Shown here in pieces: positions 22,459 through 57,632 of a DNA stretch of 64,000 nucleotides. The notes beneath the pieces are model-generated. The model made no database searches. It saw only the letters and a list, made by a program, of their open reading frames with translations, and had not been told where the DNA came from. Position 1 is the stretch's first letter. Every line of letters begins with the position of its first letter. The DNA lies in contig JALMLS010000461.1 in assembly GCA_038496445.1 (NCBI GenBank), positions 186,001-250,000 of the forward strand, read 5' to 3'. The translations under genes and the position numbers were made by a program. The DNA comes from Trichosphaerium sp. ATCC 40318. Taxonomy: Eukaryota > Protista > Tubulinea.

Positions 22459-22610
22459 CTATTTTCTGAATACACTACTATTTCGTGACTGCCCTTTTTA
22501 ATACAATATGACTTACGTACATTAAGGGTGCGGTGACTCAAAATATTGAACCCGCTTTTGGCCGCGGAATTGTAAAACACGTGTTTTGCTTTTAACAACA
22601 AATAAATGGC

Positions 22611-22678
22611 GTGATATTGCCGCTGATTTCTCCAATGACGAATACGTTGCTTAGTGGAGAAATCAGCGGCACTATCAC
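22611..22678. repeat. 24-bp-stem hairpin inside element A
   Basis: GTGATATTGCCGCTGATTTCTCCA (22611-22634) pairs 23/24 with 22655-22678; 20-nt loop. Confidence 0.9.
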
Positions 22679-22840
22679 TAATGTTTGCCCGGAAAACGCT
22701 TATAGGTACGTTAAATATTTAACACGGTTGACTGAGGCTTTTGATGTTGGTGATGACGCCCAATAACGCCACGAGAACTAAATTCGTTATATTGTGTACG
22801 TTATGATTCCACACCATCATAAAACACCAAAACACTAACA

Positions 22841-23550
22841 ATGGACAACCCAGGAGAAGTACTAGCGAGATTGCCAAATATAAAAAGATTGCCGACTAAG
22901 TACAATTATCAAGGAAGGCGACAAACACTTGAGGACATTATGCACCAAAGAAGTCAGATTTTCTTAAAACCGGTGATCCTTTTCATGCTTATCAGCGAGT
23001 TTTGGCCAATGACCTTAGGATTGTTCCTCTTGAGATAGCAAGACTGAAGCTTGCATTGATGATGAGGAATACCGAGAGAACAGGTACTTGCTTTAATTAT
23101 TTTTTTTTGATGAAAATCAAAAATTTATTTCTCCTCTTCCGCTTATTAGGTACTCTAACTTTTTACTCTCATTGACTGTTCTTTATTGTAGAAAGTGGAT
23201 GTCTTGTACTTACAGCTAACAACAGAAAGGACAATTGGGGATATCCTAGAGCTAAGATTGGTTACAAGAATTTCAAAATGGGACATTTGGTGAGATATTG
23301 CCGTGCTGGTTTTACTATTTACACTGAGGTTCCTGGTCTTGATGGAGATGACAAGTACATCATTTGGTCTGGTGTCAATAGAAGCAGGATTGATCTTAGC
23401 CATCGTTGCCACAACAAAGAGTGTATTGATTGTGAGCATGTGGTTTTTGAACCTTCTGTTGTAAATGTGGCCAGAAACAATTGTGCTTCCGCAGGCCAAT
23501 GTTTCCACCATAGATACAATGGCATTCAATTACCAGATTGTATCTTGTAA
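22841..23550 (+). CDS. His-Cys box (His-Me finger) endonuclease-like protein; spliced, with an apparent frameshift near 22960
   Basis: SGCL...WGYPR...GHLV...IDLSHRCHNKECIDCEHVVFEPSVVNVARNNC...QC..H...C matches the SHxCH...C...H...E...N..R..C zinc-binding loop of I-PpoI-type enzymes. Confidence 0.8.
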
Positions 23551-25133
23551 ACAAATTCTTGTTTCCAATAAAGGAATTTCTCAGTCATACAAATTCTATG
23601 TAGTAGGTACCTAAAATATTTACTTTGCTAGACCACCATTGGCAGCGAATATGATGCTATTATCACGTGATTTGTTCTTTCTGTTTTAGGTATTACAGTT
23701 TCCGTCAATTGACCTTTTCCTTAATATATCATCCTATTGATTGCACACTTCTGGTCACACAAATTCTGCATATAGGTACCTATGCGTATTTATAGCGGTT
23801 CTGGAATAAAATGGACTATTTTCTATGGCCTCGCATAGCCATTTCAAGCCCCTGAGCACAAGCGCCTTGGTGGATTACATGGCCAAAAGTTTTCGTTTGT
23901 CGCTAGCTGTATGAGTAACTGAAAATTTGCCAAAAAACAGCTAACTTTTTTACCCACGTTTAAATTTTGCTTATACTCTCTCAAACGCTTTACCCACACG
24001 TGTGGATATCATTTATATCCGTAACTGCTTACAAGATAAATCGTTTTATGTACTTTTCGTTTAAACTTTGTCAATAACGTCTCGCACGTGTGCTCGGCAC
24101 TTTTTAAACCCCTACCCCTAAAAGTGTTTATTTTAAAATAGGTTTTGACTTAAAAAAAGTATAATCGACTTTTTACTGACATTAATATTACACTCATTCA
24201 CTATTGAATTTTTTTAACTTACTTCTACGACAAATTATACACTGTGTTATTAGTCTATTCCTCAAATATTTTGTCATACAGTAATGTTTGACAAGTGATT
24301 TGCACAATTTCAAAAAAAGTAAAAAAATTATTTTTCTTAGTATGTATTCCAGCCGCTCAATTCTCAGGTATGTTATTCCCTCGCCATGTGCAAGGATGCT
24401 CAAAAAAAAAAAATTGAACTAGATGAATTTCTGTCATAGTGGAACCGGGGTGTTAAGTGAAATTAAGTCTCACCATTGGCAGCGAGATCACTACTAGACA
24501 CTTACACAATAGTTGTGTTTAAGTCATTGGGGTATAGGTACTCTAAGTGTTTTAGTCACAGCAATTAAATAAACTAAGTGTGTACCACAAGGTAACATTC
24601 AGTAAACCATTTTAATAGCAGCTATTGTCTACGTGGTAAAAACCACGTGGTCAAAGGCACTATTCAATGAACAACAAGTAACGGATCATAACACATGTGT
24701 ACAATGGCTTCCAATGCCCTGATTGTATCATTTTCTAAATAAACAACTGGTATAGGTAGTCTAAGGCTTTACCACCATTGACCATTGGCAGCGAGTTTGT
24801 TTTGCTTTTTTAGTGATGTTTTTTTTTGTTTTGTTGCCTCATGTTGCCTAGTAAACTGTGATCTGGTATCACAGTTTGCGTCTATTGAGGGATCACTTGT
24901 ACCTTTTTCTATTAAGTTGTCTGGGTATAGGTATGCTAACTGTGTTAAGTTACTGCACCCTTAAGTGGTGGCCACGTTTTTGTTTGTGAAATGTAGCTCC
25001 TTTGATACCTTAGGTTCTTTGTAATAGCAATGTTACAAACGAAATAGAATAGTGAATATTTTGGAGTCATTTAGAAGCGGATAAATTTTAATCAAGGAAA
25101 TTTTTTTTGAGCATTCAGAAAAACTAATATTTA

Positions 25134-28100
25134 GTCAAACAGGTAAAGTGTCCCAAAACATGTAAAATGTCCCAGAAAAAAATGGTTAAGTTTTTTTTGT
25201 ACAGGTCTAAAAAAATATACCAGTTTTTTTGGTATATACCACTTTTATACCACTTTTTTATACCAGTTTTTTATGGTATATACCAAAAAAAGTGGTATAT
25301 TTTGACTGAAATATACCAAAAAAAGTGGTATATTGACCAAATATACCAACAATATACCAAAAAAAACAGGTATAAAAACAGAAAATATACCACTTTTTTT
25401 CACCAGAAAAAAAAAAATATACCACTTTTTTATACCACTTTTTTTAGGTATATACCACTTATATACCACTTTTTTATACCAGTTTTTCATGGTATATACC
25501 ACTCTTATATACCACTTTATGCTTACTTATGGTACACCTGCAATTCCAGAAAATACACTTTATTTAATACACAGTTTGTGAGTTACAAGTTTTGGACAAT
25601 GTCCACTACAGTTACATTACTATGGGCGTCTGGAAAATTTGTCCATCTCCATGATCTTGCTGTACCTACTGTAAAAACATGCTGCGCACCTAATGAAAGT
25701 GGTCCCACCTGAATCCATCAATTACTAAGGCCTACGGAGGTCGGTTAATGTATATCAAACGAAAATAAAATAAAACTTTGTCTGGTACCCACGAACGTCT
25801 GTATAATACCTGCAATATAGTTTCCTTAATGTAGATACTGGAATCAGGTCCTGCGGTTCGAATGAGCTTGGTTTGGTTAGATTCTATGATATACTAAGGT
25901 ACCTACGCACCGTTTAATGTATGACGTCTATGATCATTCAACAAGAAAACCCATTACCAAAAAGCTCCTTAATGACCTTCTTGAAGCATACCATAAAAGT
26001 GGTATATACCAATAAAAAGGTGGTATATACCACATACCATAAAAAAATGGTATATACCACTTTATATACCATTTTTAGAAGGTCTCATTATGTGAATGAA
26101 AAGTGGTATATACCACTTCCATATACCTCTTTTTTATTCACTTAATTTCTAAAAAAAGTGGTATTTCAAAATGGTATATACCAGTCCATATACCATTTTG
26201 TTGAAAAAAGTGGTATATACCATAAAAAAACTGGTATATACCACTTTAATTTTTAGACCTGTAATTCTGTTTTTAATGTTGTGCTGGTATCATATTTTTT
26301 TAACAGTTCGAGACAGTTGTAGCAACACTGTTGTGCACCCAATTACATTGTGATAGTTTGGATGAGCCTTTGTTTCCTAGTGTAATATTCTACTTTTGTC
26401 CTATTTCCAATGTATTACTAATATCATCTGCCAAGGTAACACTATGCTCGTAATGTAATGTGGTATTGATGACCACTATACACACCTAGAATCAAAATTC
26501 CTAAAATTTGCATACTTGCTTCAGGTGCCTTTTTTTGGGAATGTCTTTGCAGTATAAAATTAATTTTTATTGTATACGCTCTCCCTACTGTTCTCAATAT
26601 TCTGGGTGGGTTTTTTCTGCTTGCATGTATGCACTATCCCATTTCCTATTGATTCTGTACCTGAACTATAATCTCTATTTGTTAGTGTGTATGAATTGTA
26701 GCCAAAAAATAGTGCATGAAATGTGTACACATCCCCAGCCTTCATGTTGCATAAGAACTTTTTTGAGTGATTGATAAGCGGTACCATACGCAATATATAT
26801 TCTACAGCATATTTAAAGATGTCAAATTTATAGTCAGTATGCATGAAATATTAAAAAACGAATTTAAGCCATTTCTTTTTTTTTTTCTCCAAAAAATACT
26901 TTGCAATGGTTTAGGTATACACCAAAGACTTTTCAAGCGTTTTAATTAATCCAAGCGAACGTATCTATAGATATTGCACGATATATATGCTCAAATTAAG
27001 AATCAAACTTTCTGTCGTAGCTGCAGCATGCTCACTCTAACTATTGCACATTATTTTATTGCACAACTTGTTGTGGCTAGTGAACAGCTGTAAATAGGTT
27101 ACTGAAAACCAATCACATACACACACCACAAAAATATCATAGGTTCACTGGATAGATGTTGTAAATGGTAAAGTTTTTTCAGACAAGCAGATCAACAAGT
27201 ATCAAATACTAGCAGAATAGTGAAAATATTGAGCAAAAAAAGTGTTCATTTCATATCATGGAACCACATCAACTTTAATACTGTTTCCTGCCCAGTATTT
27301 GATGATATAGTTGAGGTAACATGAAACTAAAAATTGGACGATTCCGTCCATGTGAAAGCGAAATTCAAAAGGTTCAGTTTATGTTGACACTTTTTCAGCA
27401 GATTCAGTGAGAACAATGGAGTGCACCTTGCAATTAGCCAAGGTCAAAAAATCCAATGTGATATTCCCCATAGGGGTTGTGGAGATAATATCACATTGCA
27501 TTTGCTTTGTTGATATTCTTACCTGGTGAGTAAATTTGTGGGAAAGCAAAAACATACTAGTAAGAAAAAGTAATGTGCACTCTTTCGAGAATAGCTTGAA
27601 TTTATTGTTGGAATTAGTTGTAGGTTTTAATTCTTTTGTATTACAGTCAACAGCATAGCGCCAATGGGTAGAGATAATATTGGGAAACAGAATCACTTCA
27701 CAACAGAAATCTGATAAACTTTTATTGAGTAGTAGCAATCAATGTCTCCTTTCAGTATTGGTTTGTTTTTTGGGGAACACACAACCCACAAGTTACGGGA
27801 TGAATACAGAGAACACACGCATAAGATGTACCAATTGGAAGAGTATCCCTCAAGTTTTTTTTCTTATTTTCGTTAACAGTAAATTTTTAACGTTCAATTT
27901 CTCTGCACGTGTTGGTTATCACGTGCTCTTTTGCAGTTAATTCTGGTACAATTATAAGCGTGCACCTTCTCCACTTAAAACTAGGTTCCGTGACATATCA
28001 GGCTCCTCATTTCATCAGCCTCAAAATTTTACCGCATCAAACACGTTGTTTGTGCGGCGACCTCGTTTTGATTAGTTAGAGCTCTGTTTGTGAAAAAAAA

Positions 28101-28145
28101 TATTTGGGACACTTTACCTGTTTTAGGACACTTTTCATGTTTGAC
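25134..28145. mobile_element. TIR DNA transposon relic with TA target duplication (Tc1/mariner-type target) and a nested MITE
   Basis: Left TA|GTCAAACAGGTAAAGTGTCCCAAAAC; right reverse complement TA|GTCAAACATGAAAAGTGTCCTAAAACAGGTAAAGTGTCCCA; interior has only broken ORFs. Confidence 0.7.
25202..26261. mobile_element. Non-autonomous MITE/foldback-like element with GGTATATACC/TATACCAC subterminal arrays
   Basis: TA|CAGGTCTAAAAA ... TTTTTAGACCTG|TA; dense repeats at about 25215-25520 and 25985-26245. Confidence 0.82.
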
Positions 28146-28240
28146 TAATTTGTTTTATTCGCTTTTGTTTGATTTAGAGGTCCCATTAACAGTAAAATCC
28201 AAAGAACAACATAACGCGTTCTTTATTCGTTTAGTTCTTA

Positions 28241-29615
28241 TCAAAAAAGGTACTGTAATCTATTTCCAGCAAATATAATCAAGTTACGTTTCAATAAAAT
28301 ATTTACAATTTCTTCCAACTCATCATCAGAAAGAGGTGTTTTTCCTTTTTTTGTGACACCATTAATAGAATTCTTAAGCTTCCTCTTGTTCTTTGGTCTT
28401 CCTTCAGGAGATCCTAGAAAGACATAAGCGAAAAAACCAACCGAGGTGTAACCCAGCAAAGGGAAACTTGTGTTACCTTTGCTTAACATTTCAACAACTT
28501 TCATCACGTGATTACTTAAGTCACCAATAGGTGCTTTTGGTTTTTCGTTTATGCTTGATGCTATAGCTTTATCAATCTCAGGGTGATCTTCCAGGCCACT
28601 CAATTTTGAACTCAGTCTAATCATCTTCGGTAGTCCAGCAGCGAACAAGAAACAAGGTCGGCTAAAACGAAAAAAAAGTCAGGAAAGAATGTCTCCATGT
28701 TTTCTGATTTTTTTCTTACCCAAGTTGACGAAGATGGTACAGTACGTTCTGCATTCCTTTGTCCTCAGAAATAATAAGAAACGGTACTTCTATAGGAGCT
28801 ATTTGATGCATTAACCCTGTATACAGTGCAAGTGCAAAATCACTGGCGTTTGGTGCAACTTTTGGAGTGAAGATAACACGCATTTCTGCAAGGAACGTGG
28901 TTAGTACGAATCCTGTAGATGCTACTATCAAGGATATGTCTGTACCTTGGTTTCTGTATTTTTCTGCCATCATTGGGAGCAATCGTGTTGACACCTTAGG
29001 AAGTGCCTGGAGGAGAATAAGACAATAGTTCGAAAGATATTTCTTGAACAGAGAAAAACTCCGTTCTAGATGAAGCCATGAATCGGGTTTTGGCTTAAAA
29101 GGCGTACAGGGCCACCAAATAAATACGACAAGCAGCTTTTACATTCTGGTTCAACAATATGAACTAGTTCGGAGCTACAATTGTCTAGGTCGAAGAAAAG
29201 TATATGAGATGGTTTGTAGTGTAGTGTAAGGAGCTTTGCAGGATCATTTGTAACAAACAATGAGTTTGCCTGCGTAAATGTTATTTAAATACTCTACAAG
29301 GAGGCTTTAACGCGCCTGGTGCTCCTCTTTGTTCCTATTAACGGGCTCTTTTCGGTTATTTTGCTCTTCTATTACTTTTTTGCTATCTGACACTATAAGA
29401 TTCAATGGAAGCCTTTCTGTTTCCTGATACTCGAATTGCTTTGCTATTTGCGCGTCTAGGTCCTAAAACGCTTAGAAAAATTGTTAGTACGTTTTATAAT
29501 GTACCACACGATTTAATGGTTGTTCAGTATCACCATCGTGCGTTGTAACGTGTATTAACAAATCTGAAAGATTAAACGACTTGAAACAGTACGGACAGTT
29601 CTCTCTATCTTCCAT
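28241..29615 (-). CDS. C2H2 zinc finger + PIN-like nuclease domain protein, multi-exon
   Basis: CPYC...IHVTTH; LFFDLDN, NASDFALALYTG, PFLIISEDKG (PIN acidic motifs resembling the ZNF451 C-terminal PIN); C-terminal RPKNKRKLKNSI...LSDDELEEIV helical domain. Confidence 0.7.
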
Positions 29616-30702: not shown

Positions 30703-33083
30703 GTTTTGGTAGAAGCTTTCGTTAAATTGTACAACCCAAATTTTGGAAGCTATTGGGCACGCATAGGGTTCCGGAATGCGTATCCGCAATTTCTTGGCTT
30801 TTTGACAAAATACTACCCAAGCTTGAACTAGAATCCCCACTTGTTGACCGGGAAAGAAATTCCGGAATACTACATAACCCTATGAATCCATTACTAAAAA
30901 ACCCGACAAACTTAATGTGTCAATTCCTAAAAATAACAATCCGTTTAATAAAACACTCATGAATGTTAATTAGCTCTCTACACGTAAAGACTGGACAGGT
31001 TTAGATTTAGTCACACCAAAACCACATAATCATACTTAATTAAGCACACAACAGCTAAATTTAGTGCTATTAAAATCATAAAAGCTATTTTCGTACACAC
31101 AACGCAACATGTACAACATACAAGCTGTTGTATCTTTCTGTTTTGTAGTCGCATTCCTGCAACTAGCAGTCACTCAGACTCTAATACATGAATTTAACTT
31201 TGACGGCAACCTATCAGATAGTGTTGGTAATGGGTATGCTGGAAACGCCTTTTGAATGATTTTCTGACTGTTTCTCGAAATAGAAACTTAACAATAGGCA
31301 TACCGGAGGTCTACAACATGACAGAGGGCTGTTTAGAGCTTCCAGATACTACAAACCCATTTCTGATACTAAACAACCCTGTCACGCTTATAAACAACCC
31401 ATACACTATTGTAATACAACTTGATATTGATTTATCAACTTCCGCTGCGTGGGGGAGAATCCTTGGATGGGATATTACCTCGGATGCTGGATTTTACTTT
31501 AATGGGAACGAGCTTAATCTTGCTGCTTCTGCAGATCCTTCTAGAACTAGTTCGCTTCAAAGTGGTTTTATGTCAATCTTTTTCGCGTACGTCAGCAACC
31601 AAATTGAGTTCAAAAACACATGTTCAGTTTACTAACTTTTTGTTCATTTCAGGTATGATCCTTCAACACGAAATGCTACTTATGGTATTATTGAAGATTC
31701 ATCAATACTGGAATCAACTATCAGTTCTTCTTTACCAACTATTACAGATACAGTACGAATAATGACAGATGAAAATGGCGGAGGCGAGCATTATAAGTCT
31801 TGTGTGTATACAGTGATGTTCTATTCTGGAGCTTTTATTCCAACACTGAACACGCCCCCATTTACTAGACGTCCGAGTGCTCCAACTACTATACCTCCGA
31901 CTACTGCGCCTCCAACTACTGTGCCTCCGACTACTGCGCCTCCGACTACTATACCTCCAACTACTATACCTCCAACTACTACAACTCCGACTACTGCGCC
32001 TCCGACTACTGCGCCTCCGACTACTGCGCCTCCAACTACTATACCTCGGACTACTACAGCACCAACTACCATGCCTCTGACTACTACAACACCAACTACT
32101 GTGACTCCAAATACTACCCCAACAACCGAACCGCCAACTGCTGCCCCAACTGTACCTCCAACCACTCTAACAGGTGTAATTCAAACAAATGCACCTACTT
32201 CTGTATCACCTACAACTATTTCTCCAACGACTGATCAACCAAGTACACCGGGAGCAATATCTTGCTCTTACATTTCAATACCTTCACTAACTGTGTTGTT
32301 TGTTACTATATTTGCATTACTTGTAATATAATAAAGTCATCGCACATGTTTGTTTTGTTGTTTCTTTAATAGCCTTGTCAAACTTTAAATTTAGTATGTA
32401 CAGCTTCAAGGGAAAGTTAAAATAAAACAATAAAGTACCATGCTGTGTGATGTAATAAGTCACCATACTCTGAACCTTTCATTTGCGTTATTTCTTTTCT
32501 TGTTGTTTTCTTAGCTAACATAGTCAAGAACTACTGAGATTCTAGTACTAACAGGATATGTTTGACATTTATAGTGGTTTAACTTTGAAGAGTTATGGCA
32601 AAGCAAGTTGCTTTTTGATAATTGCTGGAACGCCTCAGATCTATGAAAGTGGAACTTTGAAGCAAAGGTTGTATGTGATGGTAGTGATAGTCGAAATATG
32701 TTTTAGATTCAGAGTATGAGTTTCACAATTGCAATAAGTCTAAATAAGGTTCACTATAGAAATGTAGAATGAAAATAACCAAGAAAGCTGTTGTGTTATA
32801 AGATGAGCATTCATAGTAAGGTTTAGCAAGTCATAGTAAATTGTAAGGTTTGAGCTAAGAATCGACGCTAAGAATAAGCCGACAATAACAGTATTCGAAT
32901 GTTAAAGAAATAGTTCTGAGATTAAGAGGTTCTAAATAAACTCAGAAAAAAAGACAGCGAGCAGTAAATAAGCAACAGCGTAGAAGTAAAATGGTAGTTT
33001 TTGTGTACAAGTTTACAAACAATAACCCAGAAAGCAGCAAACAAGCGACAGCGTAGAAACGGAAATTAATATGATTTTGAGTT
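30703..33083 (+). repeat. Inverted segmental duplication, arm 1 (partner 47418-49952)
   Basis: Upstream region, gene, introns and downstream region match the reverse complement of about 47418-49952 over long near-identical stretches. Confidence 0.93.
31109..32331 (+). CDS. Surface protein copy A: signal peptide, LamG/ConA-like domain, PPTT mucin stalk, GPI-like tail
   Basis: MYNIQAVVSFCFVVAFLQLAVT; HEFNFDGNLSDSVG; WGRILGWD; (PPTT)n; hydrophobic C-terminus SLTVLFVTIFALLVI; two short introns. Confidence 0.8.
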
Positions 33084-36364: not shown

Positions 36365-37695
36365 ATGACAAGACACCTGTATTGCTTTATTCTTTGTTTC
36401 TCTTCAATACTATTACTCCACTATTGCAAAGCAACGCCCTGGGTTCATAAGTGGGATACATTATCAGATATGCTTTATATGCACGGCACAAATGGGAGCG
36501 GTATGTTAACAGATGCTCAAATAAAGTTCATGGCAACAAACTACAAAATAATTACGTTTGGAAATTGCTTTGGATCTTTCAAGTATGGTACCACAAATGA
36601 AGAAGCTGTGCTAAAAGCTGCTTCTGAAGTAAAGGTAAATCACGTGATACAAAAACGAAAGGTTAACGTATTTTTCAGGCGGTTAATCCAGACGTAAAAA
36701 TAATTTTTTACTTCAAGTCGGATATTGGCGAACAACTCGCAGAGTGTTCTAGTGCTTCTAAAACGTGGTTACAAAATGAAGATAAATGGGCTCTTCGTGA
36801 TGATAAAGGCAACATCGTTTACCATAGTAGTACGCTTTATAACGTAATAGAATACGCGCTTATGTCTTTACTAGACTCGGTAATGTTTGACCCAACTAAA
36901 CAAGATTTTGTTGACTTTTTTGTTGGCCATTTAGTGGATCTAGCAAAACATCGCCTCAGTAATGGAAAGGTAATAATTGACGGATTCTTCCTTGACGGCA
37001 TGCCAAACTCTGATACGCAAATATCAAACCTTACAAAAGCGGAAAATGACGCTCACAACAAAGCTCAAACGGCAATGATAAGAAAATTGCAAGATTCATT
37101 AAATGGACTTGGAGAAAACCAAAAAGCTCTAATGAACGGCTTAGACAGCGATTACGCTCTGAATCTTCACGTTGAAGGAGGATCAGCGTCAATGGTTGAT
37201 CACTTTGCTATACTTCAGTTTCTTGACTCTAAAACTGGAAAAATGATACCTGAAGCCATGCAACACCTCTTATTCGAAGTAATAACTTCTCCATTGAACA
37301 GTAACCGCACTCTCGAGATAAAGAGTTGGCCTGGACCGCTTATTCATCCAAAGACATGGCCTAACAATACCATCCCTAAAACACCTGCAGGATTACGACA
37401 GATGATGACTGACGAGTTTAATAATGCGTTATCGTACTTTTTACTCATTGCGGAGGAGAACCACTGGTGGGGATACTCATTATTCTGGGGAATCTCGGAT
37501 TATATCCCTTATGGAAAAGATCACACTTGTCCAGATAACTTTTATCCGCACTTACATTGTAAACTTGGTGCTCCAAAAGGTCCAGCAAAACGTGTTTCAA
37601 ACACGTGGGTTTACACTCGTGAGTTTGAATTTGCAAGCGTTTATGTTGACTTGTCAAACAGAGCTGTATCAAAAGTAACTTGGCACGACTGCTAA
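36365..37695 (+). CDS. Secreted putative glycoside hydrolase (GHL15-like), two introns
   Basis: Signal peptide; IDGFFLDG; C-terminal LGAPKGPAKR...VYTREFEFASVYVD resembles the hypothetical GH15-like family as recalled, not searched. Confidence 0.6.
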
Positions 37696-38969: not shown

Positions 38970-40181
38970 ATGAATGAAGAAGAGGTTAGCCAGAACATTA
39001 GTGACCTTGTCGCGCTCCCCGTTGAACTAGTAGTTCATATTCTCAAACAAGGCACTTTTACACTTCGTTCCGCGCAAACTTGCCGCTTCTTGCGGGATAT
39101 TGTCCATAACCACGTCGGATATCATCAAATTATTGTTAAAAGCAGTACCGAGGTGACGATGCTTTCTGGCAGTCCTTTATTGCAGAATACACCCATTCTG
39201 TTCTATAGGTATAGAGATGTAAACGACAATCAGTTGAGGTTACTAGCGGGAGTACATACAATCAATTTGTTTAGTTGTGAATCAATAACAGACGAAGGCA
39301 TCAAGGCATTGGCTGGAGTCTATGACATTGGATTATCAGAGACAAACGTGACAGACGAAGGCATCAAAGCATTGGCAGGTGTACACAAAATAGATTTACG
39401 TTTTTGTGAATCAATAACAGACGAAGGCATCAAGGCATTGGCTGGAGTCTATGACATTGGATTATCAAGGACAAACGTAACAGACGAAGGTTTGAAGGCG
39501 TTAGCAGGTGTACACTCTATCTTTTTACAAGGTAGTCTATCAATAACAGACGAAGGCATCAAGGCATTGGCTGGTGTACACACGATTGGGTTAAGCGACA
39601 CCGAGGTAACAAATGAAGGATTGAAGGCATTGGTAGGCGTACACACTATCAATTTGTTTCGCTGCAATGTAACTCATGAGGGCATCAAGGCGTTGGTTGG
39701 TGTACACAATATTAATTTATCGAATACAAAGGTAACAGATAAAGCTTTGAAGGCCTTGAAAGGTGTCCACACTGTCCAGTTGTATAGATGTAAATCAATA
39801 ACAAATGAAGGCATTAAGTCATTGGCTGGAGTCTATGACATTGGATTATCAGAGACAAACGTGACAGACGAAGGCATCAAAGCATTGGCAGGTGTACACA
39901 AAATAGATTTAGATTTTTGTGAAAACATAACAGATGAAGGCATTAAAGCATTGGTTGGTGTACACACTATAAATTTGGAACACTGTGACGTAACAGACGA
40001 AGGCGTTAAAGCATTGGCTGGTGTACACACTATAGATGTATCATACACCGAGGTAACAGATGAAGGATTGAAAGCATTGGCAGGTGTACACACTATAACC
40101 CTGTATGGTTGCTCCTCAACTTCAAAAGAGGGTGTCCAGGCAGCCGGTGCACAGGTAGTAAGGGCAGATTTCATTGTATAA
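38970..40181 (+). CDS. F-box-like/LRR protein, paralog 3 (intronless)
   Basis: LVALPVELVVHIL...AQTCRFLR plus about 14 LRRs. Confidence 0.88.
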   Translation: MNEEEVSQNISDLVALPVELVVHILKQGTFTLRSAQTCRFLRDIVHNHVGYHQIIVKSSTEVTMLSGSPLLQNTPILFYRYRDVNDNQLRLLAGVHTINLFSCESITDEGIKALAGVYDIGLSETNVTDEGIKALAGVHKIDLRFCESITDEGIKALAGVYDIGLSRTNVTDEGLKALAGVHSIFLQGSLSITDEGIKALAGVHTIGLSDTEVTNEGLKALVGVHTINLFRCNVTHEGIKALVGVHNINLSNTKVTDKALKALKGVHTVQLYRCKSITNEGIKSLAGVYDIGLSETNVTDEGIKALAGVHKIDLDFCENITDEGIKALVGVHTINLEHCDVTDEGVKALAGVHTIDVSYTEVTDEGLKALAGVHTITLYGCSSTSKEGVQAAGAQVVRADFIV

Positions 40182-40419: not shown

Positions 40420-40446
40420 GAATTGTTTCTTGGTGTAGTAGAAGTA

Positions 40447-41580: not shown

Positions 41581-42552
41581 TTAGTGTGTTCCTGGTTTAC
41601 GATAAAGTGTTTGAACATATACCACAACTTTTTTTTCCCTAAGCTCTTCAACAAACTCATCACTAAACATACCATAGCTACATAGCAACATCTCCAAACT
41701 AATCAAGGGATTTATACCATCCTCGCTTATGTTCTTACATCCCTTTATAGATAACGTCCTGACAGTAAGTAGTTCTTTAATTCCGTTGTCTGTAACACTT
41801 TGGATATCGTTTAGGGTAAGCATCTTAACACTTTTTAAAGCTTTAATGCCTTTGTCTGTAATATTTTGACAGTTGCACAAGTCTACACACTCAGTTCTGG
41901 ACAATGCTGTAATACCCTCATCTGTTATTGTAGAACAATTAGAGAGATCTACTTTGTAGGCACCAGCCAATGCTTTGACACCTAAAATAGTATTACAATT
42001 GACACAAACAGGAATATTGCTTAGCATACCTGTATCAGTAATATTCATACATTTACGAAGGACTATTGAGTGTACACCAGACAGATGTACAAGTGCGTCA
42101 TCTGTTACATTAGTATGATTTAATACTATAGTATGAACTCCCTTTAGTGCTTTAATGCCTTGATCAGTTATGTTCTTACACCAGCCCAGCCTTATCTCAT
42201 AAACTCCAGCAAGTGATGAAACACCCTCATCTGTAATTTTACAGCATGAGAACATATCCAACCTGTGAACACCTTTCAGAAGTTTAAGCTGTGAGTCTTC
42301 AACATTATGAAAGCAACACATAGAAATTCTTGTGCTTTTAAGTAAAGGACTTCCACATAACATCTTGAAATGTTCTTCTCTTTTTATGAAAAGAAATCCA
42401 TATCCCACGTGTTTATTAACGATATTTCGCATTAAATGACACGTCTGAGCTGCGCGCAGGGTATACCTGCCGCATTTGAGGATGTAAACTATTATCTCCA
42501 CTGGTAGAGAAATAAAGTCGATGAGGTTCCCTGTTTGTTCAGTGTTACTCAT
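41581..42552 (-). CDS. F-box-like/LRR protein, paralog 4 (more divergent; probable 48-nt in-frame intron 41982-42029)
   Basis: FISLPVEIIVYIL...AQTCHLMR; LRRs; removing GTATGC...TTTAG restores ITDTGVKALAG. Confidence 0.85.
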   Translation of the reverse strand: MSNTEQTGNLIDFISLPVEIIVYILKCGRYTLRAAQTCHLMRNIVNKHVGYGFLFIKREEHFKMLCGSPLLKSTRISMCCFHNVEDSQLKLLKGVHRLDMFSCCKITDEGVSSLAGVYEIRLGWCKNITDQGIKALKGVHTIVLNHTNVTDDALVHLSGVHSIVLRKCMNITDTGMLSNIPVCVNCNTILGVKALAGAYKVDLSNCSTITDEGITALSRTECVDLCNCQNITDKGIKALKSVKMLTLNDIQSVTDNGIKELLTVRTLSIKGCKNISEDGINPLISLEMLLCSYGMFSDEFVEELREKKVVVYVQTLYRKPGTH

Positions 42553-45932: not shown

Positions 45933-47246
45933 ATGAAGGCATCACCATTAAAAAAGGTAAATATGGATATAAAAACTTGATCTAATTTCGCCAAGCAAAT
46001 TAATAAACCAGAATCGACGTATTGCAACACGTTACTTGCCCTTCCGCTCGAGTTACAGCTAGAAATATCAAATTTAGAGTTTGAAGTGTTCCAGAAGTGG
46101 CCTATTTTATCAAAACACACAGCAATAACAACAAGGTTTGATGCAGATTTGAAAAAACATGGCACTTGGCTGCAATGTTGTGAAGAAGAAAACACGAACA
46201 AAAGCAACAAAACAACTCCACTAATAGCATCACAGAATACAATAATATGTCAGGAATCTTATAAACACGGCATTTTAGATGGAGAGGCCAAACTGTGGGA
46301 TAGTAAGACAGGTTTGCTATTTATTCAGTGTATATACATAAATAACAAGAAGCATGGTGATTTCAAAACGTGGTACACAAATGGTAAGTTACGACAGTAC
46401 AGTCACTACATTGACGGAAAGAAAAATGGATGTCATAAAAAATGGCATTGCAACGGACGTATGGCTTTTAAATGTAATTATGTTGACGATAAACAAGAGG
46501 GAGAATTTAAGTTGTGGTATGACAATGGAAGATTATTTAAAGAGTATAAGCTTGTCAATGGTTGTGATAGTGAGCACAAGGAGTGGTTTCGTAATGGTCA
46601 AATACAAACATATTGTTATCGTGATAAAGACAATATTACACGACAATACAAGGAGTGGCACGAAAATGGGCAGTTAGCCAAAGTTCACAATTACATAGAT
46701 AAAGATTGTACTCAGTATGAAGAATCAATGTGGCATGACAATGGACAATTGCTTAGCCAATGCACTATTATCAATAACAAAGAACAAGGACAGTACAGAC
46801 GTTGGCATAATAATGGACAGATATGGATTCAATGTAATTATGTGGACAGTAAAATAGATGGAGAGTACAAAGAGTGGTATTACAACGGCCAACTGAAGCA
46901 AAGTTATAGGTATGACAATGGTGAGTTAGTCGGTGATGCTAAAAAATGGTACTACACTGGCCAATTGTGTGTTCAATGCCATTATATTCAAGGTAAAATG
47001 GAAGCAGAGTACAAGCAATGGCATATAAACGGACAGTTACATGTATTGTTTAACAACGAAAATGACAAAATGGTTGGAGAATATAAAAAATGGGACATGA
47101 CAGGAGAGTTGTATCTTTCTATCAATTTAGTGAATGGTGGTTTTGAAAGAAATAGAAGCTACAATAACTTGCTAACTGAGGAAGAGATATTCTTCAGGCA
47201 ACTAAAGACATATGATGATTTCGATTTTGAAGACGGTATGGACTAA
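45933..47246 (+). CDS. F-box-like + MORN-variant (YwqK-like) repeat protein; short 5' intron 45957-45995
   Basis: MKASPLKK|QIN...LLALPLELQLEI, then about 11 repeats of GEYKxWxxNGQL. Confidence 0.8.
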
Positions 47247-47417: not shown

Positions 47418-49952
47418 AACTCAGAATCATATTAATTTCCATTTCTACGCTGTCGCTTGTTTGCTGCTTTCTGGGTTATTGTTTGTAAACTTGTACAAAA
47501 ACTACCATTTTACTTCTACGCTGTTGCTTATTTACTGCTCGCTGTCTTTTTTTCTGAGTTTATTTCGAACCTCTTAATCTCAGAACTATTTCTTTAACAT
47601 TCGAATACTGTTATTGTCGGCTTATTCTTAGCGTCGATTCTTAGTTCTGACATGGGTTTGAAGAGGACCAGATTTCCGAAAAGAATAGCAAAACTGCACT
47701 AAATAATGTTACAAATACATCACTTGCTTTTGGTTTTTTTACCAATTTGGCCCATGCAAAGTTACCACAACAAACCGCCGAACCACCTCTGTAGCATGGC
47801 CATTGTGTGGCATTTCTATAGTGAACCTTATTTAGACTTATTGCAATTGTGAAACTCATACTCTGAATCTAAAACATACAACCTTAGTTCCACTTTCATA
47901 GTCATAATCCATGCTATTCAAAAGCTTGTAGGGATTACTTTCGTTCATAGATATGAGGCGTTCCAGCAAGTATTCAAAAAGCAACTTGCTTTGCCATAAC
48001 TCTTCAAAGTTAAACCACTATAAATGTCAAACATATCCATGTGATCGTCTGTTAGTCCTAGAATCTCAGGAGTTCTTGACAATGTTAGCTAAGAAAACAA
48101 CAAGAAAAGAAATAACGCAAATGAAAGGTTCAGAGTATGGTGACTTATTACATCACACAACATGGTACTTTATTGCTTTATTTTAACTTGCCCTTCCTTG
48201 AAGCTGTACATACTAAATTTAAAGTTTGGCAAGACTATTAAAGAAACAACAAAACAAACATGTGCAATGACTTTATTATATTACAAGTAATGCAAATATA
48301 GTAACAAACAACACAGTTAGTGAAGGTATTGAAATGTAAGAGCAAGATATTGCTCCCGGTGTACTTGGTTGATCAGTCGTTGGAGAAATAGTTGTAGGTG
48401 ATACAGAAGTAGGTGCATTTGTTTGAATTACACCTGTTAGAGTGGTTGGAGGTACAGTTGGAGCAGCAGTAGGCGGTTCAGTTGTTGGGGTAGTATTTGG
48501 AGTCACAGTAGTTGGAGTTGTAGTAGTCAGAGGTATAGTTGGAGGCACAGTAGTCGGAGGCGCAGTAGTCGGAGGTATAGTAGTTGGAGGCACAGTAGTC
48601 GGAGGCGCAGTAGTCGGAGGCATAGTAGTTGGTGCCATAGTAGTTGGAGGCGCAGTAGTCGGAGGTATAGTAGTCGGAGACACAGTAGTCGGAGGTATAG
48701 TAGTCGGAGGCACAGTAGTCGGAGGCGCAGTAGTCGGAGGTATAGTAGTTGGTGCCACATTAGTTGGAGGTATAGTAGTCGGAGGACGCATAGTAACTGG
48801 GGGCGTGTTCAGTGTTGGAATAAAAGCTCCAGAATAGAACATCACTGTATACACACAAGACTTAAATTGCTCGCCTCCGCCATTTTCATCTGTCATTATT
48901 CGTACTGTATCTGTAATAGTTGGTAAAACATCAGTGACAGTTGATTCCAGTATTGATGAATCTTCAATAATACCATAAGTAGCATTTCGTGTTGAAGGAT
49001 CATACCTGAAATGAACAAAAAGTTAGTAAACTGAACATGTGTTTTTGAACTCAATTTGGTTGCTGACGTACGCGAAAAAGATTGACATGAAACCACTTTG
49101 AAGCGAATCAATAGTAGCAGAACCTCCCGGAGTAGCAAGAACAAGTTTTTCCTGGTTAACGTAAAATCCACTATCCGTGACACTAGCCCATCCAAGGATT
49201 CTCCCCACACGGGGGATGTAGGTAACTCAATATCAAGTTGTATTACAATAGTGTATGGGTTGTTTATAAGCGTGACAGGGTTGTTTAGTATCAGAAATGG
49301 GTTTGTAGCATCTGGAAGCTCTAGACAGCCCTCTATCATGTTGTAGACCTCTGGTATGCCTATTGTTAAGTTTCTATTTCGAGAAACAGTCAGAAAATCA
49401 TTCAAAAGGCGTTTCCAGCATACCCATTACCAACGCTATCTGATAGGTTGCCGTCAAGGTTAAATTCATGTACTAGAGTCTGAGTGACTGCTAGTTGCAG
49501 GAATGCGACTACAAAACAGAAAGATACAACAGCTTGTATGTTGTACATGTTGCGTTGTGTGTACGAAAATAGCTTTTATGATTTTAATAGCACTAAATTT
49601 AGCTGTTGTGCTTAATTAAGTATGATTATGTGGTTTTGGTGTGACTAAATCTAAACCTGTCCGGTGTTTACGTTTAGAGAGCTAATTAACATTCATGAGT
49701 GTTTTATTAAACGGATTGTTATTTTTAGGAATTGACATGTCAAGTTTTCGGTTTTTTACTAACTGGACGCATAGGGTTATGTAGTATTCCGGAATTTCTT
49801 TCCCGGTCAACAAGCGGCGATTCTAGGTCAACCTTGGGTGATATTGTGTCAAAACGTTAAGAAATTATGGAATAATATTCCGGAACCCTATGCGTGCCCA
49901 ATAGCTTCCAAAATTTGGGTTGTACATTTTTACCGAAAGCTTCTACCAAAAC
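47418..49952 (-). repeat. Inverted segmental duplication, arm 2
   Basis: Reverse complement of about 30703-33083. Confidence 0.93.
48276..49548 (-). CDS. Surface lectin-like mucin copy B; -1 frameshift in a G run near 49205 (real or sequencing error)
   Basis: Paralog of 31109-32331; TGGGGAGA (4 G) versus TGGGGGAGA (5 G) in copy A splits the exon between two frames. Confidence 0.72.
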
Positions 49953-50130
49953 CGAAAAAAGGTTGGTTGTAAAAATAGGATTGTCACTATTTTTTTATTG
50001 ATACCTTTTATTCAAATTTGGCAGAGTTTTACACGCTCCACCAATGGCTGACAACATGTCGGCATCCACTTAAACATTTCCGCTTTGCGGCAAAAAAGCC
50101 GAAAATTGTGCGAGTTTCCTGTCATTTAGA

Positions 50131-50730: not shown

Positions 50731-53276
50731 TCAAATTTCTTTATGGTTAGTGTGTTTCGTTACCTCATTATTGTCTTCTAGAAGACTAAAATCTTGCACT
50801 GTATCCAAGTGTTCTGTGAATAAATCTGTGACTTCTTGTCTGAAACCAAATGTATTAAAGAATGGTTCTAAAGGTTGAGCCAAGAACTTTTTTTTCTTCT
50901 CCTCTTTTTCATCATCCAACGCCCATTCCTTTTCTTTTTTAAGTAGTTAGAACCTTTGGCAGCTATACTCGTTTACTTTTCATACCTTTTAAAGCTTGAG
51001 CGTTATCTTTAAGAGCAATACTAGCGCTTGACTTGAGCCTTTCAAATTCTTTGTCCAAAACACCATCATAGTTTTCAATTGCTTTTTCAGCCTTCTCAAT
51101 GCGTATTTTATCGGCAATAGTGATCTTAACCTTTGGTTCTTTAATTGAATTCAACACTTCTGATGTTGAGAGTCTCTTAAATTGTCTAACAGTCGTGATA
51201 TGCTTGGAAATCTTATCAACAATCTCTTTACGAACTTTACACTATGGTAATAGTTAGTTGTGATACCAACAATCTACAACAAGCACGTGTACCTTTGTTA
51301 AAAAGTTATCTATTGGAGATGCAAGATCTAGACGGTCACCACCAACATGGTTTGCACTCTTGAGTATGCATGCTTTGTTAGCTGTAAGAGATGCAGATAT
51401 TTTTTCTTCTATCTTGCATTGCCTCAAATACCCAACTAAAGCAGCACAAGATATGTTCTTTCCTTCCAAGTGTTTAGTGAGGGTATCACACTCTTTGTCC
51501 GTTGCCTCGGGAAAATACTTTCTGAATAAACTTCGTTGTTGTGAATCATCAGACCAATCAAGTTTGATGTGATGATTGAAACGTCCAACTCTTAAAAAAG
51601 TAAGAAAAAAAATTGTGTTGAGGGGTATACCGTATAAGTGCTTCGTCAAGGTTTTCGTATCTGTTTGATGTAGCAACCACAATTGGTCCATCTTTGTTCG
51701 CTGGTCCATCAAGAGCAACTATATAGACGTTTAGCTCATAGTATAGCAATGAGAAAAGTGAAGTACATACGAAGTAATCCTCCAAGAGAAACTCTGCTAG
51801 AATGTTTCTTTGAAGTATCTTTCGAAAAATCATCTCGTTTTGGACAAACGACATCTATCTCTTCTATTGCTATCAAAGTTCTCGGATTTATACGACCAAA
51901 CATTCCTTGAAAAAACAAAGACTAAGAAAAAAACAAAGATTTCATAACGGGTTCACATACTCAATAACCTAGAGTCGTTCAATGTTCCAGCAGTTAAGCT
52001 TACAAGTATTATATCATACCTTAAGGTATTTATTGTTAGTGAGTGCACGTGTTCGGTTAAATAGTCACGTACTTTAGGAACCCAGCAATAAAACCTAGAA
52101 GCATAGTTTTGCCAGTGCCTGGGGGACCTACTAGTAGTATACTCTCACGATGATTCTGATTATGTTGCTTCCACATCTCTACAGTAAGAAAAAAAGGTAA
52201 ACAATTTCATAAAACAAACTGTAGGTATTACCAGGGTGATACTTGAAGTTTGTTAGAATCTTCATAATATTGGTTTTTACGCTGTCTGCGAGTATGATGT
52301 TATCTAATGTAGAAACACGTGGTTTTGTTACAAGTCGTCTTTGACCACTCCAGTCAGGTTGCCTATAAATGTTAGCTTGTTTTAATTGCCTTTGACGGTC
52401 TTACCAGATGATTGTTTTGTTTGGATTCTTATTTTTTTCGTAAGTCTCTCCTGCTTCATTCAATACTTTTGAGAAAACGTCAGAGTTCCATCTGAATGTT
52501 GAAAGGGTAATAGTATGAATCTAATGATAAAATACATAAGAGTTCTTACTATCAAAGATAGTTATTAACGCACACTGCCAGGTTGATTCTCCCACCCAAT
52601 ACCATGCTGAAGTTGTTCTTTCTTAATATCGATCCATAAATTAGCACCATTGTAAGATATCATATAGCTCCCATCGTCAGGTTGAAAAACAAGATTCATG
52701 TCATCTTCTGGGATACCTGCCAAAAAATTAAAAATATAAATGCAATTTAACAAACAATTGAACGTACTTTCGTCACTCCAGTAATATTCTGATGTCTCTA
52801 CTTTTATACTAGAATTACTTACTTTATCTTTGTAATTATGCGAAAGCCAGAAGCACAATCGATCGTATACAGGGCCATCATCATTACCATTTGTAACCTA
52901 ACAAACACTTTTAGAAAAAAAAGTCAAGCAAGCTAAGGTAAAACGAACAGTGAGCGAAGATATTATGCCCCATTCTCCAACAATATGCTTCCAACAGAAT
53001 TTAAACGTTGAGTGAACTGCATCTTTCATATAATACAGAATTCCCATAACAACAGCGCTTCTAAAGATAGTCTCTTTCATCATTTCATTTGAAAATGAAA
53101 AAACTACTGATGAGTATGCACGCAGTATAGCCATAGTGCTCTATAACATCTTAGTATTTCATATTGGTATTATCGCCATAGGTACGTACAACGATAAATA
53201 CTGCAGCCCCTGCGTATATGTAGTACTGGATGTTGTTGACATCACCATCAAGATGACTGCTCTTCTTTTCAGACAT
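50731..53276 (-). CDS. BCS1-like AAA+ ATPase, multi-exon
   Basis: N-terminal hydrophobic segments, ILLVGPPGTGKT (Walker A), IAIEEID (Walker B), VSLGGLL..LDG, ATSNRYENLDEALIRVGRF. Confidence 0.85.
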
Positions 53277-53873
53277 TTCTCTTTGAAGGTTTGAAACGTG
53301 TTTGGTTTCTTATTTTATAGGTACAAGAACCATTTAATATTCCTTGAAGTATGGGATAAAACTTAGAATAAACAGACCTACGTCATCGAAAAAGTTCCAC
53401 ATGATAGCAAAATTGCGAAAAAGATTAAAAAAACAATTGTGTTGCACATTTTTTTTGAAATTGTTACAGATATTACTTAAAAGTATGTGTAAGTACCTTG
53501 TAAGCGCCACTATTTGAGTTCATTTAATGTCACGAGGAGCATCATTTGCAGACCAAGAGAAAGCTGGAGCATGTAACGCGATTTTCGGCATGGTAAAAGC
53601 GTTGGGTTTCCGTATGTTTACAAAAGACCTTGATTGCACCTACAACACAACAATCTCACTAAGTCCATCGTAAGTAAACATGTATTATCAAACATGCCAA
53701 ATTATACCTGTTGATGCTTTCCCTGTTTGAATGGTGCCAACACTGTAAAACCTATTCGAGCACAAGAGAACAAGTTAACAGTACACGCCACTTTGAAGCG
53801 AATGTTGAACGCCAAAACACGTGATTTCTGTTGAATGCAACCTTTTCGCCAAATAGAAGCCCAAAATGTAGTT

Positions 53874-54951
53874 TTAGAACACGGAAATTCATTTGCGATC
53901 TATCAGACGTGAAGTCGTCGATGATACGCTATATCTGCTTTCAGGGGTACACTCAATCAATCTTTCGCGTTGTGAATACATAACAGATTACGGCATCAAA
54001 GCATTAGCCGGTGTACACAAAATCAATTTAGGAGGTACAAATGTGACAGATGAAGGTTTGAAAGCTTTGGCTGGCGTACACACTATTTTGTTGTATAGCT
54101 GCGATGGTATTACAGATAAAGGCGTTATCTGCTTGGCAGGTGTACATACAATTGACTTGTGTCAGTGTAGATCAATAACAGATTCAGGTATCAAGGCATT
54201 GGCTGGTGTACATACAATTATGTTATCATGTACAAATGTAACTGATGAAGGTTTGAAAGCTTTAGCTGGTGTACACACTATTTCGTTGTCTAGTTGCAAT
54301 GGTATTACAGATAAAGGTGTTATCTGCTTGGCAGGTTGTTATCAGATTATGTTACTATCTTGTCAATCAATAACAGATGAAGGTTTGAAGGCATTAGCTG
54401 GAGTACACACTATCAACTTGTGGAATTGCGGTAATATCACAGATGAAGGCATTAAGCCATTAGCTGGAGTTTATAACATTAATATTGCCGGTTGCCGGAG
54501 AATAACAGATGAGGGCATAAAGGCATTAGCAGGTGTACATGAAATTGAATTAACTAATACGAGTGTGTCAGATGAAGGCTTGAAGGCATTGTCAAGCGTA
54601 CATACTATCATCTTGACAGAATGTGAGAGAATAACAGATGAGGGTGTAAAAGCATTGAGTCGAGTTCATACAATTGATTTAATGTCTACTAATGTGACAA
54701 GTGAATGCCTAGGGGCACTATCTGGGGCACACAAAATTTCACTTACACTTTGTCGAGGAATAACAGATGAAGGTTTATCAGAATTGGCAGGTGTACATAC
54801 AATTAATTTAGCACATACTTCAGTAACAGATGAAGGCATTGGAGCACTAGCAGGAGTTCACACAATCAACTTAATAGGCACAAGTGTGACAGATGAAGGG
54901 TTGAAAGTGTTGGCTGGTGTACCTTGTCTATATTACCACCGGATAAACTAA
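53874..54951 (+). pseudogene. LRR paralog 5, 5'-truncated (no F-box, no ATG); LRR frame open
   Basis: Similarity to paralog 1 starts abruptly near NTEIHL...DDTLYLLSGVHSI; the ORF-track start is TTG; about 15 LRRs. Confidence 0.7.
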
Positions 54952-55320
54952 GAATATAATATCAACATCCATAAATAAATACATATCACGTTACACTGAG
55001 CCTTATTTCCTTGTGTTGCCCTTAAGGGGGCACGCTGAGAAAGGAATGACCTTAGCCCCACGGGCATCTTCGGGCTTTAAACCCATCTAAAATCGCGTAA
55101 AACGCTGAAAAAATATGATAGCGAACTGTGTAGATTGATTACTTGATTTCAAAGCCCGAAATGTCATTTTTTTTCTCAACTTTTTGACCTTAATTACACG
55201 GATTTGAAACAACTTTTAAAGTTATTCATCCGCTATTGCACCACTTGGAGACGCATTTTAGGTGGTGTAGAGCAAATTCGGTATTGTTCTGCGTTAATAA
55301 CAATACTATTGTAGGGTATA

Positions 55321-55795
55321 CAAATAACTAATTTATTTCTAAATTAAGCGCAATCAATCTACATGTGTGGATTATTTATCAAAACATTGTTGCATCTTTA
55401 GATTGATTTGGGTATTGGCGACAAAACACTAAATTTATTACTAAATTGGCAACTAAATCAATCTTGGGTATTGGCGACAAATAGCTAATTTATTTCCTAA
55501 TTAAGCACAATCAATCTACATGCATGGATTATTTATCAAAACATTCTCGCATGTATTGATTGAATTTAAAGTATTGGTGACAAATAACTAATTTATTTCC
55601 AAATTAAGCGCAATCAATCTACATGCGTGGATTATTTATCAAAACATTCTTGCATGTATTGATTGAATTTAGAGTATTGGCGACAAATAACTAATTTATA
55701 TCTAAATCAGGACTATTTATGTCTAAATTGGGTATTAGTTATCAAAACATTGTCGCATCTTTAGATTGATTTGGGTATTGGCGATAAAACACTAA
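55321..55795. repeat. Tandem array of ~103-bp hairpin-forming units inside element B
   Basis: Full units start at 55321, 55478 and 55581, plus partial units; CAATCAATCTACATGC...GCATGTATTGATTG inverted arms (clearest in units 2 and 3) and a GTATTGGCGACAA box. Confidence 0.9.
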
Positions 55796-56229
55796 TATTT
55801 ATCCTTATTAGGACAAGGTGTATAAGGGTATATGGTCCGCCGGATTTATTCCTTTAGCGGTCCCCAACAGATTTACATATCTGTCAGGAACTCTTACAGA
55901 GAAAATAGTTTTGTTGTTATAAGTGTGAGATACAAAATTTCTTCTCTCCGTCGGTATGATTCATATTCCATTTTGTTTTTGATAATTTTGTATTTGCTTT
56001 TGTAGTTATTTTCATGTTTTTGTAATTTAGATTGTTTGGTTGTGGGTACGGGTGGGTGCTATCGTAGGATTGCGGAAACGTTGTTACGTTCAAGGAACAA
56101 AAGGGCTTAAGAATATCGTATTGTTAAGCACTTTGAACAATACCTACAATAAGTTAAGTACCATTACTTACACACATAATAACACTAATAGCAGAAAACT
56201 AAAAATAGAAATAAAAACCAGTTGTTTAT

Positions 56230-56613
56230 TTAAGTGAGAATACAATCACGCATTTGTACTTTAATACCAGCAATAATACAAGAATGTCCACGGCATTGGC
56301 CATTTCTCTTACACCATCTTCTTGAACTGTTAACTTTACCAGGCTCCAAGACAATGTGATCTGGGTTAGTACAAAAGGTACAATGACACAAGTGTGATGC
56401 ATCTACTAAAGTACGGGCCAAACCCGGATACCATAAGTAGTTGCCATCAAGCCCTTTGTCAAACAAAGTAATGCCCTTCTCCACATATAGAACTGTATGG
56501 GCTAGATTGAAAAGTCTGCTCATTTTTCTGGTTCTAAATACAGCACGGAGGTACCCTGCACTAGTGGTTGACCCTCTGGTGCACAATTTGCACCCGGTAT
56601 CTAGAATATACAA
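56230..56613 (-). CDS. His-Cys box (His-Me finger) endonuclease-like protein, main exon; start exon unresolved
   Basis: TGCK...AGYLR...AHTV...VDASHLCHCTFCTNPDHIVLEPGKVNSSRRWC...QCRGH...DCIL. Confidence 0.82.
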   Translation of the reverse strand: MYILDTGCKLCTRGSTTSAGYLRAVFRTRKMSRLFNLAHTVLYVEKGITLFDKGLDGNYLWYPGLARTLVDASHLCHCTFCTNPDHIVLEPGKVNSSRRWCKRNGQCRGHSCIIAGIKVQMRDCILT

Positions 56614-57632
56614 TAAGTTTCTGAGTGATTACTTTGGTTGCTTTGTTAAGGTATACGCTTAAGCACACACACAATAACCCTAATAGTGACGCATTTGAAT
56701 ATGGATTTATACTTCAACTTGTAAAGGATTGGGCCTTGAGCTGTTTGTAGTTGTAGTTTTATCAATCTCAATATGGTTAAGCACGTGTACTTAAAATGAA
56801 ATAGCCCGTATCAATATAACTCAGTGATTGATTATGCATTGTTGGTTAAGGACATCAACTTAAAGTGAAATAGCCCATATCAAAGTACAACTTTTCAATC
56901 ACCTTCAGAATCTGATTAAGGATGTGTACTTAAAACGTAATGACTCTAATGGTGGCAAATACAACATTGGTTGTTGGCGAGGGTTTTAAACAATCTAATT
57001 TGTAATTGTAAACGCTTTTGGAATCAATCTGGTAACTGTGTTAAGTAGGTGAACTTAGATCGTAATAGCAACAATCAATCTAGATAAAGTGCATTAAGGA
57101 TGTGTGCTTAAAGTGTAATAGCAACAATAGTTCCACTACGTACTTCGTACTACGTAGAACAATGTAACATTATTTTTTTTTGCTTTCAAATTGAGACTTT
57201 TTATTGAAAGTGTACCCATAGCATGTACTACGTGTGTAGATGCTATGGGTAACGTAGTTTTGAACAAATGTGCTTTTAAACAGAAAGATTGAAAAAATGC
57301 AGTTGTTTTTTGAAAAAACTTTTGCAACAAAAAAACCTCACAAAAAGGCACACGCTAAAAGTTGGGTTTTTCAAAAGCCCTCATGTCAAAGATATAGGCA
57401 CGAAAATTTGAGCCGATTTGAACAATTTCTGCACATCTCAGCGTGCCCCCTTAAGTTTATATCAAGTTAGACTAAATGAAGAAATATTGTTTAAGAAAGA
57501 ATCCAACTTGTCAGGTTGTAAGGCACCCGGACAAGCTCGGTAGGCTCTAATTGCTTCTTTCACTGAAAATGGGTCAATTTGAACAAATACCCAACCAAAA
57601 CGACCCAATACCCATATTCGTAGATGAAACAA

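Follow-up and report, generated by a model that had tools for sequence, protein, structure and literature searches.

Two Kolobok-type elements of Trichosphaerium carry nucleases of a mobile protist His-Cys-box group

We analysed 64,000 nucleotides of Trichosphaerium sp. ATCC 40318 (contig JALMLS010000461.1, positions 186,001 to 250,000; hereafter the window), which contain two elements, A and B, each with a single gene for a His-Cys-box nuclease. A and B are non-autonomous Kolobok-type elements carrying members of an undescribed mobile group of protist His-Cys-box nucleases, and what is new here is the spread of this group across transposon superfamilies together with the layout of repeats around its genes. 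We favour the reading, to which we give a probability of about 0.5, that each nuclease recognises the repeats around its own gene, which would serve both self-repression and cutting within the element family, with spread by repair.

Ends, contents and class of elements A and B

Element A (22526-24960, 2435 bp) starts with GGGTGC between TTAA at 22522-22525 and 24961-24964, and its terminal inverted repeats (TIRs) match at 13 of 16 positions. Element B (55026-57450, 2425 bp) lies between TTAA at 55022-55025 and 57451-57454 and has a perfect 15-bp TIR; the ends of both are GG...CC. The original prediction for this window had placed two TTAA-flanked elements with GGG(T/G)GC starts at these coordinates, and both the coordinates and the target-site duplications (TSDs) were borne out. 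When TTAA pairs with six exact and at least 13 of 16 TIR matches were sought, A and B were the sole such pairs in the window, compared with 0.14 pairs per window in shuffled sequence, or 0.055 with RR ends. The ends of B are far beyond chance and its boundaries secure, while those of A are probable, being only moderately beyond chance. No second copy or empty site of either element was found within the window, so that the TSDs and TIRs alone make the case for their mobility.

The 4-bp TTAA TSD, the 5'-RR...YY-3' termini (here GG...CC) and the short TIRs are hallmarks of Kolobok transposons, whose termini are defined by RR...YY ends and a TTAA TSD (PMC9587614). As the original prediction held, these are not piggyBac elements, since the termini inside the TTAA are GG and not 5'-CC. 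Its failure to see a transposase was also upheld: searches for decayed transposases with KolobokP and RAG/Transib-like hidden Markov models (HMMs), and with the local Mutator-like element (MULE), found no remnants in A or B, and the KolobokP transposase HMM had no match in A, B or the rest of the window. Self-alignments of A and B revealed no long terminal direct repeats of the kind found in KolobokP (~450 or 660 bp). Since they lack these repeats, A and B are not KolobokP. They look like non-autonomous Kolobok-type cut-and-paste elements, judging by their ends, and would be transposed in trans by a Kolobok transposase encoded elsewhere. The TTAA TSD, RR...YY ends and short TIRs are shared with other non-autonomous Kolobok elements, from which A and B differ by their conserved protein gene.

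The Kolobok-type ends, the absence of a transposase and the conserved, catalytically intact exon suggest that nuclease-only non-autonomous elements are probably a recurring type, as had been predicted; no TTAA/GG nuclease-only element was recognised in any foreign locus, most foreign contigs being short. Alternatively, A and B could have arisen by internal deletion from an autonomous Kolobok that encoded both a nuclease and a transposase and would be the protist equivalent of KolobokP; the nuclease-only copies would then be by-products. Complete elements with transposase and nuclease do exist among the relatives described below (L001, L002 and L044), and non-autonomous KolobokP families of 1.7-3.3 kb are known (PMC9587614), but the missing transposase remnant and long direct repeats in A and B make such an origin somewhat unlikely.

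The idea of a fixed size class found no support. The lengths of A and B differ by only 10 bp but their composition is unlike: in B, a tandem block of 504 bp and upstream repeats of 358 bp together account for ~860 bp, and A is made up by an internal duplication and filler. Since the two were built up differently, their equal size was treated as chance and looks coincidental. The predicted lack of DNA similarity between the interiors was true of nearly all their length, the exception being 32 bp that align at the 3' end of the nuclease gene (E=0.001). The features of A are as follows, including an open reading frame (ORF) upstream of the nuclease.

22522-22525, no strand: TTAA TSD, left end of A
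22526-24960, plus strand: element A, non-autonomous TIR element
22611-22678, no strand: hairpin near the left end, 24 bp, 96% complementary
22703-22714, plus strand: upstream copy of the A motif, TAGGTACnYTAA type
22841-23038, plus strand: ORF of 65 codons, offset by one base from the nuclease frame; either an upstream ORF or an N-terminus displaced by a frameshift
23059-23083, plus strand: short candidate first exon for nuclease A (8 codons plus 1 base)
23084-23191, plus strand: predicted phase-1 intron, 108 nt, with a motif copy at 23147
23192-23550, plus strand: His-Cys-box (I-PpoI-like) nuclease exon A
23604-23648, plus strand: A motif copy 53 bp past the stop, then a 13-mer present three times, in A only
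24535-24941, plus strand: three more A motif copies, at 24535, 24753 and 24928
24700-24888, plus strand: degenerate duplicate of the last nuclease codons and 3' flank (copy of 23515-23712)
24961-24964, no strand: TTAA TSD, right end of A

Those of B are:

55022-55025, no strand: TTAA TSD, left end of B
55026-57450, minus strand: element B, with its gene on the minus strand
55311-55814, no strand: 103/157-bp tandem repeat block (504 bp)
56154-56191, minus strand: B motif and direct-repeat copy, 40-75 bp past the stop
56230-56600, minus strand: His-Cys-box nuclease exon B
56646-56686, minus strand: B motif and direct-repeat copy in the predicted intron, TTAAG-N7-CTTAA
56774-57131, minus strand: 358-bp block upstream of the gene, in which the pseudo-palindrome TTAAG-N8-CTTA(A) is present in five copies
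57213-57251, no strand: 16-bp hairpin
57451-57454, no strand: TTAA TSD, right end of B

The nuclease genes and the carriers of their relatives

One PF05551 exon was found per element (36 and 43 bits for a cut-off of 27), in agreement with the single His-Me finger nuclease gene predicted for each. The exons, which were queried separately and not as a joined spliced protein, are 36% identical in protein sequence and both match I-PpoI in a PDB search, exon A weakly. A structural model of exon A with a mean predicted local distance difference test (pLDDT) score of 93.5 has I-PpoI as its nearest fold (Z 6.5 over 90 residues). In an alignment of 18 proteins the Ser-His, the second His, the Glu, the Asn and most zinc ligands were invariant, and the same catalytic and zinc residues are listed for the I-PpoI-like group (PMC9587614); judged from this alignment, these residues are intact in nucleases A and B. 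Furthermore, the two frames are open and the identity between them by codon position is 0.50/0.57/0.26, which means that synonymous sites are saturated whereas the protein has been kept. A word-indexed homolog search with exon B gave no matches.

The host DNA is AT-rich and intron-bearing, and its gene content is amoeba-like. At the start of both exons lies a phase-1 AG, three codons ahead of the first Cys. A phase-1 intron is also predicted in seven homologous loci, where it lies one or two codons ahead of this Cys; the splice acceptor that had been proposed at the same codon in both elements is therefore credible. The simplest intact model of nuclease A has its ATG at 23059 and an intron at 23084-23191, and encodes 127 aa. 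Only two small public runs cover part of the region, and one contig of an RNA-like run (depth 3.4) spans 22854-23008 in the upstream ORF of A with no differences. The frame offset in A is therefore no artefact of the assembly, and this stretch seems to be transcribed. The upstream ORF was also considered as a relative of the N-termini of homologues, but the similarity was not significant and this was dropped. No convincing first exon was found for B.

A homologue search returned 155 proteins, and a metagenome scan yielded mostly KolobokP-like loci, which were taken as controls. The closest relatives have an insertion before the catalytic His and group with A and B in trees, this protist group standing apart, with weak support, from nine metagenomic KolobokP-like nucleases in both trees. 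The carriers of these relatives are varied. In three loci a spliced DDE transposase with RAG1/Transib motifs lies beside the nuclease, and L001, L002-L007 and L044 are protist transposons that combine a His-Cys nuclease with a RAG1/Transib-like transposase lacking a Pfam hit. The L002 family has a CAC-type end (...TTCAAAGTG) found with three different flanks. A model of the RAG1/Transib-like transposase (pLDDT 42) had RAG1 or HzTransib as all of its top 37 fold hits, and a PDB sequence search with the neighbouring transposases gave no match; the RAG1/Transib identity is thus suggested by motifs and a low-confidence model. In L047 the nuclease relative, which is without the shared intron, has telomere repeats on one side and a Harbinger-type gene (DDE_Tnp_4) on the other. 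In L012 (957-8492, assembly GCA_049309705.1) it is 3.8 kb from a gene for a 1082-aa primase-helicase (DUF5906), and in L045 (6256-8624) it adjoins a Tet/JBP dioxygenase gene between tRNA genes. The inverted repeat around L045 was rejected as a TIR, being a pair of tRNA genes. Viral contigs contained one unrelated phage HNH and no TIR match.

The varied carriers of the closest relatives imply that the nuclease hitchhikes across transposon superfamilies, just as Fanzor does. The nuclease family is not Kolobok-specific, and the nearest kin of A and B are found in RAG1/Transib-like and Harbinger-type contexts. In our (incomplete) literature search we found no description of His-Cys nucleases spread over superfamilies beyond KolobokP.

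Among the other loci collected, L029 is a single metagenome contig on which three or more PF05551 genes are packed into 4 kb. In the KolobokP-like element L022 (659-1133), the long direct repeat forms an imperfect palindrome of ~470 bp.

Repeats around the nuclease gene and their possible role

Eight copies of a motif centred on TAGGTA lie on one strand of A. They are found upstream of the nuclease (22703), in the intron (23147), 53 bp past the stop (23604), and further on. Element B has five upstream copies of the pseudo-palindrome TTAAG-N7/8-CTTA, another in its intron and one past the stop, and holds seven of the eight such sites in the 64 kb. The foreign loci have the same layout with other motifs. 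Most of the nuclease genes, those of A and B among them, have a locus-specific direct repeat in the intron and shortly past the stop, and frequently upstream too; most motifs are pseudo-palindromic, and they are scarce elsewhere on their own contigs. Of 12 loci, 7 had a significant (p<0.05) same-strand direct repeat between the intron and the 3' end, four of these at the floor of 0.002, whereas the background rate of this test was 4.9% and none of the eight KolobokP controls was positive. A test of all three regions gave p<=0.013 in 5 of 11 loci. Locus L049, fetched after the pattern had been noted, provided a blind confirmation with a 23-nt exact repeat between the intron and the stop codon.

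The 9-mer TTCACTGAA is common to three loci whose proteins are 41-57% identical, and ACTTGG is common to another pair. Since the DNA of the three loci is unalignable and only one of them has a visible transposase, the motif follows the nuclease and not the carrier. I-PpoI binds a pseudo-palindrome as a dimer, and its half-site, AGGTAG, is similar to the motifs found in A and in L001 (PMC2602781).

In our candidate explanation the motif beside the gene is the putative recognition site of the encoded nuclease. A nuclease dimer would bind imperfect copies of the motif and so hold down its own expression, as does I-TevI, which represses itself via an operator similar to its homing site (PMC2988022). 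Better-matching or unprotected copies inside the element family would be cut, and repair of the break from another copy would spread or amplify the nuclease-bearing version. Such repair may leave internal duplications like those in A and B, and the motif-bearing duplications of both elements fit repair-driven spread but are not proof of it. The empty insertion site would not be cut. This view, which we favour, is akin to the model proposed for KolobokP (PMC9587614).

It could instead be that empty or excision sites are what the nuclease cuts, perhaps with the help of an RNA from the element, and that repair restores the element, which is close to the Fanzor-like empty-site homing of the original prediction. 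I-PpoI cuts at a central TTAA (PMC9587614), the empty site of A ranks 18th of 447 TTAA sites for the A motif, and capture by many superfamilies parallels Fanzor (PMC3627910). The empty site of B, however, ranks 261st of 447 for the B motif, the two empty sites have only TTAAGT in common, and the partial match in A is still present at the filled left junction. RNA structure at the right end of A was not significant (z -1.2 and -1.3) and there was no Rfam hit in the window; the genes stop 1.2-1.4 kb short of the element end and the protein of ~125 aa is without an RNA-binding part. It has also been argued that, unless insertion is site-specific, an enzyme guided by its own protein cannot follow the element to a new target with every jump (PMC13565253). 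This part of the original prediction therefore fared poorly, and we consider it quite improbable.

The repeats could also be RNA signals, such as duplicated branch-point or acceptor regions through which the catalytic exon could be skipped, or they could be recombination scars, with the nuclease serving some other step of transposition. The intron copy lies 31-66 nt ahead of the acceptor, and some of the repeats, all of which are direct, are 30-50 nt long and exceed a His-Cys dimer site. This is nevertheless an unlikely account, given the upstream copies, five of them in B, and palindromic motifs that differ from locus to locus, are rare on the rest of their contigs and track the protein clade.

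Several observations weigh against the reading of the repeats as the enzyme's own sites. Three loci (L044, L012 and L045) are without the repeat and L047 is without the intron, and the intron copy falls where a branch point lies, so that a role at the RNA level is possible. The support for the protist group is weak (88/69; approximately unbiased test, p=0.055 for a joint clade with KolobokP), and the group was selected with a profile built from these same sequences. Either nuclease copy may be dead, A from a possible frameshift and B for want of an exon 1. The last point would also suit a captured homing-endonuclease gene that is passively carried as neutral cargo and now decaying, but the full conservation of catalytic residues at saturated synonymous divergence, the recurrence of the gene in many lineages and carriers, and the stereotyped repeat layout leave this very improbable.

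Surroundings of the elements and wider significance

A separate MULE at 19736-22459 ends 66 bp left of A. It is bounded by ~50-bp imperfect TIRs and a TSD of 8-9 bp, and its transposase gene is spliced, with two introns (48 and 47 nt) missing from run X1 contigs. As the MULE has TIRs and a TSD of its own, we rejected it as part of A. An element with TATACCAC-type repeats at both ends lies at 25200-26260 and is matched by a 667-nt contig of run X2 (98.6%). Element B starts 70 bp past one member of a dispersed F-box/leucine-rich-repeat gene family (4697-5818, 18473-19615, 38970-40181, 41581-42552 and 53893-54951). Elsewhere in the window, unpaired TTAA-GGG(T)GCT ends resembling Kolobok termini occur at 653 and 6838 (minus strand), a 2.1-kb inverted duplication (89%; 30703-32764 and 47811-49952) includes a gene for a Thr/Pro-rich repeat protein, and a 176-bp direct repeat (98% identical; 58083-58258 and 59762-59935) has its copies 1.68 kb apart. 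Other ORFs include a GHL15 glycosyl-hydrolase-like one (36862-37695) and one with a MORN_2 repeat (46086-47246).

The closest known system is KolobokP, which shares the Kolobok-type ends, an I-PpoI-like His-Me nuclease within a DNA transposon, and the proposed cutting within its own repeats (PMC9587614). It has 450/660-bp terminal direct repeats and a transposase whereas A and B have neither; A and B further differ in their protist host, their spliced gene and nucleases that tree apart (weakly), and the intron/3' repeat of their group is absent from the eight KolobokP controls. Fanzor1 and TnpB are likewise accessory nucleases captured by several superfamilies and found in nuclease-only non-autonomous elements (PMC3627910, PMC13565253), but they are RuvC nucleases whose structured guide RNA is located at the end of the element. 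A and B instead encode a His-Cys-box fold, no guide RNA was detected, and the gene does not abut the end. I-PpoI and I-DirI share the fold and the catalytic and zinc residues, and some such genes have spliceosomal introns (PMC2602781, PMC9548176). They sit in nuclear group I introns, unlike the nucleases of A and B, which are carried by TIR elements and not by a group I intron or rDNA; the window gave no Rfam match. With I-TevI and the free-standing homing endonucleases of phage T4 (PMC2988022), the nucleases of A and B share likely site copies beside their own gene and a position outside a self-splicing intron, but they are eukaryotic, of a different fold, and have a three-position layout of putative sites that includes an intron copy.

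More broadly, we tentatively suggest, as an idea that could well be wrong, an undescribed and widespread protist class of spliced His-Cys nuclease cassettes, bracketed by their own sites, which would invade Kolobok, RAG1/Transib-like and Harbinger families and spread by protein-guided cutting, a guide-free counterpart of Fanzor. In the literature searched, I-PpoI-like nucleases are described for no transposon group other than KolobokP, and the pairing now reaches protists and several superfamilies, including a relative of RAG1/Transib. With a candidate DNA site for each enzyme, the role of a protein-guided homing nuclease for a transposon becomes open to direct tests. Should the repeats prove to be the cognate sites, nature would have supplied a collection of small nucleases (~125 aa), each together with its target.

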